Source: Thecamonas trahens ATCC 50062 (taxonomy: Eukaryota > Protista > Apusomonadida). Taken from it: DNA of 64,000 bases. The notes beneath the pieces are model-generated. The model saw only the letters and a list, made by a program, of their open reading frames with translations. It was not told the origin of the DNA and did no database searches. A program made the translations under genes and the position numbers. Location of the stretch: NCBI RefSeq assembly GCF_000142905.1, contig NW_013657640.1, positions 61,208-125,207 of the forward strand. The letters run 5' to 3'. Positions 20,470-25,132 of the stretch are shown piece after piece (positions within the stretch are counted from its first letter, which is position 1; each line of letters opens with the position of its first letter).

Positions 20470-20915
20470 GGTCCTGGCTTCTTCCGAGCGGCCGCAGTGG
20501 CAAAGACTCGGTGGCGGTCGGCAGTGGCCGGTGGGTGTGGGTGGGTGGCCGGTGGCCGGTGGGTGGCGGCGGCGACGGCGCCGAGTGGCCAAAAAAAGGT
20601 CGCGAACCGGCGGGAGGGGAGACCAGCTAAACCGACGTGGCGTCTGGTGTCTGCCCGTCACACAACAGCTAGTGGCCTCTGACGCCCAACAGTAGGCTTC
20701 TGCTGTTGCTCAGAGAGCTGGTTGCCTATCAACCCCGCCCCCGGACGAGCCGTGCCTGCCCTTAACCCCCGTCTGACACTCGAAACCGACCAAACGCCAA
20801 AACTGCGACCTTTTTTCGCTTGGCCGCCCAAATCCGAGGGGGGGGGGGGGGCAGCAGTCAAAACAACTTAGATCGTTTGGTTTGATAGCGCCGTGCTGCG
20901 AGGAAGCAGCCGAGG

Positions 20916-22264
20916 CTAGACCTCGAGGAGGAGATCTTGGAGGAGCGGGATCATGGATGATGGGGTGCGAGTGTGGCTGAACCGCTTGATGAGCTCACCG
21001 GTGCGGCTGAAGACGATCATGGTCCACGGTGCCTTGAACGCCTTGCCTACCATCGACGACGCCTTGTCCTTGATCCAGGCAAAGAGCGGATGCGCATCCG
21101 AGCCATTGACGGCGGCAGCCTGGAGGAGCTGAAAGGTGACCCCATACGAATTGGCAATGGACCGGATCTCGGCCGCCGAGCTCGGCTCGGCCGCGTCAAA
21201 TTCGCCGGTCGAAGGGACGCCGAGGACAATCAGGCCCTGTTCGCTGTACAGCTCGTGGATAGCTTGCAGCTGGAGGAAGCGTGACTCGGCGAGCTTGGAC
21301 CGCGTCCCGATGTTGGTCACAATGACCACTTTGCCGTGGAGGGCGGAAAAGTCGTAGGCGTCGCCATCGAGAGTGGTCATCTCGAACTGGTACAGGCTCA
21401 GCGGCGATGACGACGGCGCTCCGGCCTGCGGCATGCACAGGTGGTAGAAGAGCGGCTCGTCCTTGATCGGGTGGCCGCGGACAACGTGCTCAAACACCTC
21501 GGCCTTTTCCATCCGCACCGCCAAGCCAAGCGCAGCCTCGCGCGAGCACCCAAGCTCAGCCGCCAGCCAGTCGACAAGCTCCGAGCCGAGGAAGCACTGC
21601 TTGTAGGTGCGAAGCCGGTACTTGCGGTCCTTGATCTCCACCGGTGGGCGCACAGCGTCGCCGACACCAGCCGCTCCATCATCTGGAGCGTCATCAGCGT
21701 CGTCGTCATCAACACCATCAGCATCGTCGGAAAAGACATCCGGATTGATGCCGAGGGCGCGGATGGCAAGGTCGATGACTTCAAAGTCGGAGATGTCGTC
21801 CACATCGGCCGGCTTGTCTGCACCTGGCACCGGCACACCATCTCCAGCATCGGTCGAGTCATCGCAAAAGACGTAGAAGAGGGTAGCATCCCGAAACGGC
21901 TTGTCCTTGTCAACCACATGGCGGACAAGACCTGCGTCGACGAGTTCCTGTCCCACCAAGGTGGCCTTGGCCCGAGCATCGCTATGACGAAACTCCAGAA
22001 TGTTGTAGAAGGCCAGGATCCAGTCAACCATCTCTGATCCCACAAAGCATTGTCTATACTGCCGCAGGCGCCATCTCCGGTCACGGATCTCCACGCCAAG
22101 TGCCGGTTCGCGGGCAAAGGCCACTATGTTCTCAATCTGGAGGGAGGTGGGGGGTGAGGTTGAAGGAGTGGGATGGGGGGAGGGGGGGGGCGGGGGGGGG
22201 CGTGGGGACGTGTGCTTACTTCATGGGGTGGAACAGGGTACGGTAAGTTGGAGAGGTCGACCAT
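20916..22264 (-). CDS. DEP-DEP-GPx-like fusion protein, catalytically degenerate paralog; exons 22264-22220 and 22136-20916
   Basis: Two DEP domains (IRDRRWRLRQYRQCFVGSEMVDW; IKDRKYRLRTYKQCFLGSELVDWL) then a GPx fold (GKVVIVTNIGTRSKL...VNGSDAHPLFAWIK). Exon 1 MVDLSNLPYPVPPHE ends at GTAAGC in phase 0. Confidence 0.85.
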
Positions 22265-22775
22265 GGTGTGTGTCTTCTTGTCGTGGAACNNNNNNNNNNN
22301 NNNNNNNNNNNNNNNNNNNNNNNNNNNNNNNNNNNNNNNNNNNNNNNNNNNNNNNNNNNNNNNNNNNNNNNNNNNNNNNNNNNNNNNNNNNNNNNNNNNN
22401 NNNNNNNNNNNNNNNNNNNNNNNNNNNNNNNNNNNNNNNNNNNNNNNNNNNNNNNNNNNNNNNNNNNNNNNNNNNNNNNNNNNNNNNNNNNNNNNNNNNN
22501 NNNNNNNNNNNNNNNNNNNNNNNNNNNNNNNNNNNNNNNNNNNNNNNNNNNNNNNNNNNNNNNNNNNNNNNNNNNNNNNNNNNNNNNNNNNNNNNNNNNN
22601 NNNNNNNNNNNNNNNNNNNNNNNNNNNNNNNNNNNNNNGGGAGGGGGGGGGAGTCGGAACACTCTCATTGTTGTGTTATCGGAATCATCATCTTGCCATT
22701 CTTGATGAACTACATCAGGCGGCCACCAATGCGCAGAGCAGGGTTAGGTATGCGCAGAGAGGCCGACGAGCTGAT

Positions 22776-22850
22776 GCGTCAAGGAGCTCGGGAGTCGGGT
22801 CGGACACGGCAGATGCGCGCGCCTTGAGACCCGGTCCGTCATGTTGAGGC
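22776..22850 (-). promoter_or_regulatory. Candidate eukaryotic SECIS element in the 3' UTR of the Sec-GPx gene
   Basis: Minus strand: GCCTCAA-C-ATGA-C-GGACCGGGTC-TC-AA-GGCGCGCGCATCTGCCGTGTCC-GACCCGACTCC-C-GA-GCTCC-TTGACGC. By eye this gives an ATGA/GA core, a ~9-bp helix II, unpaired AA, an apical mini-stem and a 6/7-bp helix I. Folded by eye only. Confidence 0.7.
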
Positions 22851-22897
22851 GATGATGAGCACGGGGAGATATGAGTGGGTGGAAAAGTCACGGCCAA

Positions 22898-24195
22898 TCA
22901 GGCCATAGAAGAGGATGTCGCGCCGCCGGCGGCAAAGGAGCCAGGGATGACGGCCGGATCGGTAAGGAGCTCTTGGATGAGCGGCGCCATGGACGAGGGC
23001 TTGCGCGGCGGCCGTAGCGGCGGACAGGCTCGCCCTTGGCATTGAAGACAAAGTGAGTGAAGTTCCACTTGATGCTAGTGCCAAGAGTCGACTTGAGCTG
23101 CGACTTGGCCCAGCGGTAGAGCGGATGGGCGCCGGCGCCGTTGACCTCATACTTGGTCATGAGGAGAAAGTCCACGGCAGCAGAAACGCCCCAGTCCTTG
23201 TCGTCAAGGAAAGCGATGAGCTCGTTCGGGTTTTCGGCGTCGAACGGCTCTTGATTGCCAAACTGGTTACATGGTACACCCACGATGACAAGACCCTGCT
23301 CGTGAAAGCGATTGTGGAGGTCAACGAGCCCCTTGTAGCGGGACTCGGTCAGGCCTCAGAACGACGCCACATTGGTGACGATGACGACCTTGCCACGGAG
23401 GGCGCCAAAGTCGAACGGCTCGTGGAAGAGCGTGTCCATGGAAAAGTCGTAGAGCGTCGAGTCGGGCGTCGAGTCGCCCGTGGCGACGGTGACGTGGTAG
23501 AAGAGCGGCTCGTCCTTGATCTTGTGGTCGCCGACGACGTGGGCAAAGATCTCGGCGTTTTCCATGCGCTTCGCGACCGAGAGCGCCTTGGGTCGCGAGC
23601 ACTTGAGCTCGACGCAGAGCCAGTCGATGAGCTCCGAGCCGAGGAAGCACTGCTTGTAGGTGCGGAGCCGGTACTTGCGGTCCTTGATCTCCACCGGCGG
23701 ATGCTTGGCAAAGGTGTCGGCGAGGAGCTTGATTTCGCGGTCGCGGGCTTCGGCCTCGTTGACTGGCGACTCCTGCGCCGCACTGCCGTCGTCGCCAAAC
23801 AGCGCGGGATCGATGTTGAGTGCACGGACAGCAATGTCAATGAGCTCCATGTCAGTCGGGCCCTCGATGTCCTCGCCGCCGAGGTTGGCGACGCAGCCAA
23901 TGAGCTCGTCGGCGCCAACAGGCGCAAACGAGTAGAACAGCTTCTCGTCAAGAAACGGCTTCTCCGGGTCGACCACATGCGCAAAGAGACCCTGGTCCAT
24001 CAGCATCTGGCCGAGCGCCACGGCACGGGCGCGGGCCATGGTCGACGTGTAGTCCATCACTGCATAGTACGTCAGGATCCAATCCACTAGCTCGCTTCCC
24101 ACAAAGCACTTGCGGAATCGGCGCATACGCCAGCGGCGATCGCAAACCTCGACGCCCTCGTCCGAGTCGCGCATGACGCGAACGAGTTCTTGGAC
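22898..24195 (-). CDS. DEP-DEP-glutathione peroxidase selenoprotein (main exon); Sec-TGA at 23358-23356; probable 1-nt frameshift at about 23010; 5' exon unresolved (gap)
   Basis: Reading through the TGA gives [47 protein letters not shown]...VNGAGAHPLYRW...IKWNFTHF, which contains the GPx catalytic motifs. Two DEP domains lie upstream in the same frame. Confidence 0.9.
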
Positions 24196-25132
24196 CTGTC
24201 GCGTGCGATAGCGTGACGGCCAGTATGGTGACCAAACCAAGTTGATGGCCATTGTGCGACGATGAGTACCAACGATCATCGCCAACGATGAGCGCCAACG
24301 ATCAGAATGGCGACCAGCGCAAGACCACCAAGACCAGCACGAGGTTCCCGGCATCGCCATCACAACACACAGCACACACAGCACATACAGCACATACAGC
24401 ACATACAGGCAGACAGTCATTCACACAGATGACAGATGGACAAATATATACGAACACGCGCACACACAGTGAGTCATGGCCATGGCCGGGGAGAGAACCG
24501 AGCTTGTGGCAGGTGGGGGGGGGGGGGCCANNNNNNNNNNNNNNNNNNNNNNNNNNNNNNNNNNNNNNNNNNNNNNNNNNNNNNNNNNNNNNNNNNNNNN
24601 NNNNNNNNNNNNNNNNNNNNNNNNNNNNNNNNNNNNNNNNNNNNNNNNNNNNNNNNNNNNNNNNNNNNNNNNNNNNNNNNNNNNNNNNNNNNNNNNNNNN
24701 NNNNNNNNNNNNNNNNNNNNNNNNNNNNNNNNNNNNNNNNNNNNNNNNNNNNNNNNNNNNNNNNNNNNNNNNNNNNNNNNNNNNNNNNNNNNNNNNNNNA
24801 AACACTAAGGTCGGCAAGGTCTGCGGTGAGTGGTGTACAAGGAGTGGCAGTTATGTGGGCTGAGGTCATCCGCAACTCCTTAAAAAAAACAGCGGGGTCA
24901 GGCATGATGGGTACGGAAATGGTGATGAGAAGATAACAATGATGGATGACGATGATGGGGGACACACGTGCAAGTACGTACCGCATATGCTTTCAAATAG
25001 AAATGGTGTCGTTGGTGGATGTGGACGTAGTGTGCAAGGGGTGGGTCGAGGGGGAAATGGTTAGCTCCGCCGTCCTGCGATCAACGGGTGGCTGGGAAAA
25101 ATCTTGCCGACTGCGACGGATCGAAGCATCGT

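Follow-up and report, generated by a model that had tools for sequence, protein, structure and literature searches.

Does the open reading frame that stops at a TGA on the minus strand of a contig of the apusomonad Thecamonas trahens encode a truncated DEP protein, as it is annotated, or does the TGA specify selenocysteine (Sec) within a larger enzyme? The question was raised by a prediction, made from the DNA letters of a 64,000-nucleotide (nt) stretch (G000:C40:61208-125207 of the 28.7-Mb genome; hereafter the window, whose numbering is used below), that tandem DEP domains are fused here to a Sec-containing glutathione peroxidase (GPx). Runs of N (22222-22637 and 24531 onward) flank the DEP-DEP-GPx gene, which, with all of its features described below, is on the minus strand. 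Our analysis indicates that the gene very probably encodes a 438-residue selenoprotein with the order DEP1, linker, DEP2, linker and monomeric GPX4-type GPx domain, in which UGA codon 286 is decoded as Sec through a selenocysteine insertion sequence (SECIS) and which would act as a DEP-localised peroxidase; judged from sequence comparisons, the in-frame UGA almost certainly encodes Sec. UGA-encoded Sec in GPx enzymes, decoding through SECIS elements and the annotation of selenoproteins as truncated products are all well known, and the new elements here are the architecture and the extent, in both size and spread, of the family that shares it.

The in-frame UGA and its flanking domains

A six-frame search of the genome matched the GSHPx profile (PF00255) over its positions 1-107/108 at 99.9 bits (cut-off 27), with exactly one TGA inside the match, at 23356-23358. 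Since the whole profile is matched around this single internal TGA, the codon falls at the peroxidatic position (NVASF-U-GLT), an assignment on which the sequence, the reads and the orthologs agree. Past the TGA, the reading continues in frame (GLTESRY...) through the motif with the catalytic Gln (23245-23274), which aligns with the equivalent GPX4 motif, to KWNF (23059-23070), identified by sequence and by alignment to solved relatives as the site of the catalytic Trp and Asn. The Sec/Gln/Trp/Asn catalytic tetrad is found at conserved positions and aligns column by column with GPX4-derived chains.

Database searches were performed separately with the pieces before and after the TGA, and a joined model, with X at the Sec position and a read-supported base restored (see below), was used solely for identity counts and for the tree. 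The post-TGA piece alone matched GSHPx positions 34-107 in Pfam (67.1 bits, 1.2e-18), and the pre-TGA piece matched the DEP family (PF00610) in two stretches (132 bits, 7.2e-39). The first DEP domain covers residues 21-96 (23926-24153; matched in the genome search at C40:85133-85363, window 23926-24156, with 73.4 bits) and the second covers residues 174-241 (23491-23694; C40:84704-84901, window 23497-23694, 64.6 bits), among approximately 38 DEP matches in the Thecamonas genome. The two are joined by a linker of ~77 residues that is mostly acidic, and the GPX4-type GPx domain (22958-23460) begins ~10 residues after DEP2, whose coding region includes a 68-nt patch common to a neighbouring paralog. 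The original prediction that a catalytic-site TGA is preceded by two DEP domains and followed, in the same frame, by the remaining GPx motifs is thus borne out by the profile matches on both sides of the codon.

The TGA is retained in a polyadenylated transcript

Reads from public sequencing runs were mapped on 22640-24530. Runs X1 and X2 are labelled as the same organism, X3 is an estuary metagenome from another study, and X8 is a subsurface metatranscriptome. The TGA was unchanged in X1, X2 and X3, which come from three different samples, and no joints (introns) were observed; the codon is therefore real, being neither a miscalled base nor a stretch that is spliced out.

In X1, a run of 15.7 million letters, one contig covered 22660-23659 at a depth of 113 and ended with 25 loose T on the plus strand, a run of letters that is absent from the genome. 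We read this end as the poly(A) tail of a minus-strand mRNA, position 22660 as its polyadenylation site and, because of the tail and the depth, X1 as cDNA. Overlapping X1 contigs with depths of 62-113 tiled 22660-24166 and were interrupted only at the 68-nt patch shared with the paralog. The DEP part, the TGA and the GPx part are therefore held in one polyadenylated mRNA, whose poly(A) site lies 700 nt beyond the UGA and whose 3' untranslated region (UTR), judged from the end of the X1 contig, is 238 nt long (22660-22897).

Three variants downstream of the TGA (23179, 23182 and 23269) distinguished X1, X3 and X8 from the assembly, and all three were synonymous; X2 agreed with the assembly at these positions. 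The variants shared by X1, X3 and X8 suggest that the environment harbours a Thecamonas trahens-like organism of a second haplotype or strain. Further differences from the assembly were found at 22926, 23715 and 23827, and the one at 22926 (Gly to Ala), common to X1 and X2, is possibly a further error of the assembly.

Gene model and assembly error

The locus contains one two-exon gene running from 24483 to 22660, which is real and expressed. Exon 1 of the coding sequence (24466-24483, MAMTHC) was taken from the NCBI model AMSG_12157 (P0002), whose protein begins MAMTHC and continues VQELV; the GT after 24466 is visible in the DNA. The splice between exons 1 and 2 likewise comes from this model, and no read covers the junction. 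The implied intron (24196-24465) is of the GT...AG type, with gtgtgtgcg at its 5' end and gcgacag at its 3' end, and the DNA-like runs X2 and X3 continue unbroken across its 3' border. Exon 2 (22898-24195) carries all remaining codons, that for Sec and the true stop among them.

Within exon 2, one base is missing from the assembly between 23011 and 23012, a coding-strand G in a GG run, which creates a false frameshift. The reads carry an extra C behind 23011 in X1 (113.4 of 113.4 depth) and in X2 (2.6 of 2.6 depth). In the assembly as given, the KWNF-bearing frame extends to 22888, and the C-terminus predicted from the paralog (PSSM.PL.Q.LL) is found in another frame that stops at 22898. Restoring the base joins the two frames, so that the true stop is 22898-22900, itself a UGA, and the full product has 438 residues with Sec at residue 286. 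The corrected C-terminus, ...RRYGPPRKPSSMAPLIQELL...SSSMA-stop, agrees with the RYGPP... motif of the orthologs. The stop at 22898 that had been proposed from the letters alone was thus the right codon, although in the uncorrected assembly it belongs to a different frame from the GPx motifs. An apparent one-base frameshift was also seen in a short G run of a SelW-like gene of this genome (CTS-U-G; L012:1400-1500, minus strand), and homopolymer indels seem to be recurrent in the Thecamonas assembly.

NCBI splits the gene into AMSG_12157, a 285-residue DEP protein that ends at VASF, and AMSG_12156, a 78-residue fragment of the downstream part that is named 'Glutathione peroxidase' in UniRef. One gene is therefore annotated as two, and the suspicion that it had been mis-annotated as a truncated DEP protein was correct.

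Orthologs retain the TGA and the downstream frame

Orthologs were sought with the paralog as query, then with an environmental homolog, and then in a profile search of 1.84 billion representatives, which added eight 50%-identity clusters that end at the same motif, one of them reading ANGASF. With that one variation, the protein predictions found for the family all stop at ...VNVAS-x. We examined the DNA of ten orthologs (L015, L016, L017, L018, L019/L020, L024, L025, L026, L027 and L028), whose GC content ranges from 0.32 to 0.66, and in all ten a TGA follows VAS-x and is itself followed by an intact GPx with the Gln and WNF motifs. The frame downstream of the UGA is conserved: in four orthologs, identity to the Thecamonas protein after and before the UGA was 58.1 and 57.0%, 43.1 and 42.1%, 43.4 and 39.2%, and 45.5 and 41.1%, respectively. 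In ortholog P0032, the codon was rendered as W by one metagenome pipeline because of an alternative translation table; the DNA has TGA.

The UGA codon aligns to Cys in bacterial-type GPx. The search for homologs with either residue, which had been suggested along with the prediction, recovered no Cys-containing DEP-GPx among the family members found, and the only non-Sec member found was the Thecamonas tandem paralog, with Ser. A search of the ESM Atlas with the Acanthamoeba family member as query returned only generic GPx clusters and no DEP-GPx cluster.

Named members of the family come from Luapelamoeba hula (EukProt), Acanthamoeba castellanii Neff and Pharyngomonas kirbyi (EukProt), with Luapelamoeba (Amoebozoa) and Pharyngomonas (Heterolobosea) known from truncated protein predictions that end at the same motif; many further members are environmental sequences. 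On L025, a 31-kb JGI contig with a GC content of 0.66, the gene has a TPR-repeat gene on one side and an NFRKB-like gene on the other; its product is extended by 100 residues N-terminally of the DEP tandem, and TGA serves as both Sec codon and stop, as in Thecamonas.

The Acanthamoeba castellanii protein (XP_004341938.1, ELR19838.1, L8H527; P0049, 361 residues) has the same DEP-DEP-GPx order and 39-43% identity to the Thecamonas protein. It is present in UniProt with DEP and GPx domains and carries the public names 'DEP domain containing protein' and 'Glutathione peroxidase'. It is not recorded as a selenoprotein because a false intron in the public model takes out the Sec codon together with ~25 residues around it. 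On an Acanthamoeba-like contig that clusters with A. castellanii, the gene (L017:31-1182) has the TGA at the same codon and is followed by a canonical AUGA...AAAA...GA SECIS (L017:1254-1331). Public annotation thus hides the family in three ways, in that its genes are cut at the UGA, split in two, or deprived of the codon by splicing.

Acanthamoeba can be transfected, and it offers a tractable system for testing the DEP-GPx idea. SECIS function has already been manipulated there (PMC8038987). The same 2021 study of Acanthamoeba redox enzymes reported a single predicted GPx (ACA1_365760) without a UGA (PMC8038987), which may or may not be the L8H527 locus. We found no paper describing a DEP-GPx selenoprotein, Thecamonas selenoproteins or a DEP domain in a selenoproteome, in a search that left subscription journals mostly outside its reach, and an earlier description of a DEP-GPx selenoprotein may exist. 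In the literature found, a Sec-GPx permanently tethered to a tandem DEP signalling module is not described. The novelty claimed for the architecture therefore stands as far as this literature goes, but not as a peculiarity of Thecamonas: the family is widespread and its Acanthamoeba member was already in UniProt.

Selenocysteine machinery of Thecamonas trahens

The genome contains a tRNA-Sec (74.4 bits; gathering score 47), SepSecS (285 bits) and an SPS2 gene (L011, G000:C3:661585-665307, minus strand) with an in-frame TGA of its own at ...KLKG-U-GCKV. A run of N breaks the SPS2 gene immediately downstream of its Sec codon. eEFSec is present as well, with matches to PF21208 (euk_SelB_III; 4.6e-36) and to human eEFSec (1.9e-132). 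The top match to TIGR00475 was rejected as eEFSec, being mitochondrial EF-Tu, and the true eEFSec is the second match. An SBP2-like L7Ae domain had human SECIS-binding protein 2 (7zjw_B) as its best solved match, at 1.9e-17 compared with 1.5e-5 for L7Ae.

Beyond SPS2 and the DEP-DEP-GPx gene, the genome has at least five genes for UGA-containing selenoproteins: three GPx genes carry a TGA at the same catalytic position and two SelW-like genes carry one at CxxU, while one further GPx of the genome uses Cys. The machinery on which the prediction depends (tRNA-Sec, eEFSec, an SBP2-like gene and a Sec-containing SPS2) is thus all encoded in the genome, and by these sequence criteria Thecamonas trahens uses selenocysteine.

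A SECIS candidate in the 3'UTR

A hairpin of the ATGA...AA...GA type had been noted after the stop codon, and a SECIS-like type-II stem-loop is indeed present at 22776-22854, inside the mapped 3'UTR and beginning 56 nt after the stop. It consists of helix I, an AUGA core (22842-22839) followed by C, a helix II of 3 + 6 bp, an unpaired UCAA (its AA at 22825-22824), an 8-bp mini-stem, and C-GA-G with the partner GA at 22789-22788. The candidate was located with our own scanner, which requires an N-UGA core, a GA partner, a helix II of at least 8 pairs and an unpaired AA 9-15 nt after the core, and whose score is the sum of the constrained ViennaRNA energy and the helix I duplex energy; a first, ungapped scanner had given no match, and the energy-based version was used instead. 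It returned one candidate in the 3'UTR, with a total score of -27.9 kcal/mol, and the unconstrained minimum-energy fold of the 79-mer has the same SECIS shape.

When the 238-nt UTR was shuffled with its dinucleotides preserved, an equal or better candidate arose in 7 of 1000 shuffles. Across the window (126 kb on both strands), nine cores scored at least as well, that of the gene itself included, from which ~0.02 would be expected in a UTR this long; the background is ~0.06 hits per kb. Close to the 3' end of the UTR (~22690), further ATGA motifs were rejected as SECIS elements because they lie too near the poly(A) site.

Similar type-II candidates were found behind five of the six other Thecamonas selenoprotein genes, three of them with a CUGA core and all with C after the UGA. 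The candidates with a CUGA or UUGA core followed by C belong to two GPx genes (L007:1857-1937 and L008:2645-2723), to SPS2 (L011:962-1043, minus strand) and to one SelW-like gene (L012:1198-1278, minus strand). The apusomonad-like ortholog L024, whose protein is 57-58% identical to that of Thecamonas, has in its 3'UTR a candidate (L024:1417-1504) composed of UUGA-C, an 11-bp helix, UCAA, a mini-stem and C-GA-G. The two helices are unrelated in sequence, yet the layout is that of the Thecamonas element, and we regard this shared layout as the most telling support for a putative SECIS at the locus. Canonical AUGA-A...GGAAAAC...U/C-GA elements are present in the amoebozoan orthologs. When the candidates were aligned with MAFFT and RNAalifold, the 3' strands were misplaced, which precluded a formal count of covariation. 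The SECIS candidates of the Thecamonas genome, those with CUGA or UUGA cores included, are all missed by current Rfam models, and automated surveys of protist selenoproteomes may undercount here.

The tandem paralog

A second gene with the DEP-DEP-GPx order lies next door (20916-22124, minus strand), to which the NCBI model P0001 adds a short upstream exon; its product is 100% identical to an NCBI glutathione peroxidase of Thecamonas trahens ATCC 50062. This paralog has Ser (TCC) at the Sec position and has lost the catalytic Gln and Asn; its sequence suggests a partner of the Sec enzyme that has no catalytic activity. At 23697, contigs of X1, X3 and X8 run out of the shared 68-nt patch and continue in different sequence, which was taken as the paralog's without alignment, and the paralog appears to be transcribed. 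On the minus strand at ~20645-20713, ~200 nt beyond the stop of the paralog, we noted a weak SECIS-like fold with a CUGA-G core and a score of -25.8, which may have arisen by chance or be a relic of a Sec-containing ancestor.

Proposed mechanism and alternative explanations

Reads, transcript, machinery, a SECIS-like element and ten orthologs together support the core of the original prediction, a single DEP-DEP-GPx gene with Sec. In the mechanism that we propose, codon 286 would be read as Sec when the element at 22854-22776 recruits the SBP2-like protein and eEFSec carrying Sec-tRNA(Sec), and translation would end at the second UGA (22900-22898) of the mRNA polyadenylated at 22660. Drawing on established knowledge of GPX4-type enzymes and DEP domains, we suggest that the product reduces hydroperoxides with glutathione or a protein thiol, these reductants being proposed because the domain has no resolving Cys, and that the tandem DEP places the peroxidase at a membrane or signalling complex for local removal of peroxide or lipid hydroperoxide. 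If this is true, a given membrane or signalling site can have such removal built into it.

Several points limit this interpretation or weigh against it. The insertion of Sec rather than another residue at the UGA is deduced from nucleic-acid and comparative evidence, and the targeting of the enzyme to a membrane or receptor by its DEP domains would follow from general knowledge of such domains. A search of the genome for PSTK found only one KTI12-family locus, and the run type of X1, which we read as cDNA, is labelled 'DNA?'. As for the SECIS candidate, its helix II is broken by a 1x2 internal loop; the folding energy of the 79-mer is no better than that of shuffles (z -0.83) and is ordinary for its GC content; and the scanner rules were partly set after viewing the other selenoprotein genes of this genome, which makes the probabilities given above indicative only. 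Rfam cmscan, with E up to 10, found no SECIS match at the locus; it was also blank on the six other Thecamonas selenoprotein loci and on two ortholog contigs, including textbook elements, and because these positive controls were missed too, the result is uninformative. Two covariance models built here missed the hairpin as well: R1, from the SelW-like SECIS alone, found only itself, and R2, from three amoebozoan DEP-GPx SECIS elements, found no Thecamonas element, even a canonical-looking one, so that both are too sequence-specific to be informative. Finally, a tree of the GPx domain separates the Thecamonas pair from the amoebozoan DEP-GPx proteins, with monophyly not rejected (p-AU 0.20), and is thus compatible with one origin of the fusion or several.

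Three other accounts of the UGA have to be set against decoding as Sec. Were it a genuine stop, only a 285-residue DEP-DEP protein would be made and the GPx downstream would be what is left, untranslated, of a former fusion; in favour are the NCBI annotation of the gene (P0002), the neighbouring paralog, which demonstrates that the peroxidase part can decay, and the lack of a match to any curated SECIS model in the UTR. Such a relic is nevertheless very unlikely, since the downstream frame keeps all catalytic residues and is as conserved as the upstream one across orthologs that are 39-58% identical, ten orthologs retain both the TGA and an uninterrupted GPx frame after it, the three polymorphisms shared past the UGA are all synonymous, and the mRNA reaches a poly(A) site 700 nt beyond the codon with a SECIS-shaped element in its 3'UTR. 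We consider it extremely unlikely that the UGA is instead read through as Cys, Trp or Arg by near-cognate suppression, a reading that can appeal to the deduction of the inserted residue from sequence and to the W given by the pipeline for P0032. That W stems from the translation table, the Sec pathway looks complete, UGA recurs at the homologous site of three more GPx genes and in SPS2, and here it occupies the peroxidatic position itself, at which no residue but Sec or Cys is functional. The chance that the TGA or the fusion is an artefact of sequencing or assembly, through a miscalled TGC or TGT or the misjoining of two genes between N gaps, is next to nil: N runs do flank the locus, a real one-base error lies 345 nt downstream of the TGA and another apparent one lies in a SelW-like gene, but the reads have already refuted this account, each of three runs on separate samples, an unrelated estuary metagenome among them, showing the TGA, and the DEP-DEP-TGA-GPx order recurs on independent contigs from at least 10 other organisms.

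The main functional alternative to local hydroperoxide reduction concerns what a Sec-containing product would do. In yeast, Orp1 (Gpx3) is a peroxide sensor that oxidises its bound partner Yap1, and the Sec-GPx could similarly serve as a sensor and thiol oxidase whose DEP domains hold the oxidised target, which would make it a signalling relay and not a scavenger. Being monomeric and devoid of a resolving Cys, the domain belongs to a class that forms mixed selenenyl-sulfide or disulfide bonds with partners; DEP domains serve to dock onto proteins and membranes; close counterparts of these DEP domains are joined to FAD-disulfide reductases and occur in Grx-DEP-DUF547 proteins; and an apparently transcribed paralog that looks catalytically dead lies next door. 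As the partner is hypothetical and lipid-hydroperoxide reduction explains a membrane-tethered GPX4-type enzyme equally well, we hold the relay to be possible though on the unlikely side. A broader and more doubtful proposal is that this DEP subtype is a general docking or regulatory module for the thiol and selenol redox enzymes of protists, in which case the DEP-DEP-GPx(Sec) protein might be a membrane- or receptor-proximal sensor that oxidises DEP-bound partners, and the Ser paralog a decoy or regulator.

Comparison with known systems

With Sec decoding as the favoured reading, the closest known counterpart of the catalytic part is GPX4, which shares the UGA-encoded Sec position, SECIS-dependent decoding and the Gln, Trp and Asn motifs. 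GPX4 is the best solved relative of the post-UGA piece (E ~1e-23 over all 115 residues), and GPX4 entries come first among natural proteins (8e-23), with an end-to-end alignment. GPx1, in contrast, is matched only in part (residues 3-88, 3.6e-15), and its long subunit-interface loop is absent here, the HPLYRW...TSIKWNF stretch being short. There is no Cys between the Gln motif and VNG. By these sequence features, the domain tests as a member of the GPX4-like monomeric subgroup without a resolving Cys. It differs from GPX4 in a 9-residue insertion (the LDDKDWGVS region) and in its setting: GPX4 is a single-domain protein of ~170-197 residues, while this domain follows two DEP domains and makes up the last third of a chain of 438 residues. 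Its sequence resembles bacterial-type GPx about as closely as animal GPX4, and the nearest large-database neighbours of the post-UGA piece are bacterial-type single-domain GPx proteins with 45-53% identity.

Among solved structures, the N-terminal 285 residues most resemble the DEP tandems of DEPTOR and P-Rex1/2 (E 4e-17 to 1e-13). Those proteins combine the tandem with PDZ or DH-PH-PDZ domains, whereas here it is paired with a redox enzyme, and the long (~77-residue), acidic linker between the Thecamonas DEP domains is unlike theirs. Precedents for fusing DEP to a thiol-redox enzyme are the class IV glutaredoxins (Grx-DEP-DUF547), which the original prediction had rightly cited and of which P0019 (491 residues; Grx, DEP and DUF547) is an example, and the DEP-FAD-disulfide reductases P0016 and P0021 (~680 residues), in which DEP is joined to an FAD-dependent pyridine nucleotide-disulfide oxidoreductase with the active site GGDCLNVGCVPSK. 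Both were met in other organisms and have another catalytic partner and another domain order, and no Sec was present in those seen. The DEP motif VEIKDRKYRL-TYK-CF-GSE is nearly identical in the Thecamonas protein and these DEP-redox fusions, and DEP2 is 50% identical to the DEP domain of P0016, which suggests that fusion of this DEP subtype with redox enzymes is recurrent.

Yeast Orp1/Gpx3 (Hyr1) is also among the solved relatives (3cmi, 5.6e-19) and shares the monomeric GPx fold. Orp1 acts through a Cys and a resolving Cys and relies on a separate scaffold, Ybp1; the Thecamonas protein, by comparison, has Sec instead of Cys, lacks the resolving Cys and carries its docking module in the same chain. 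By analogy, the Orp1-Yap1 relay is a possible functional counterpart of the DEP-DEP-GPx selenoprotein.

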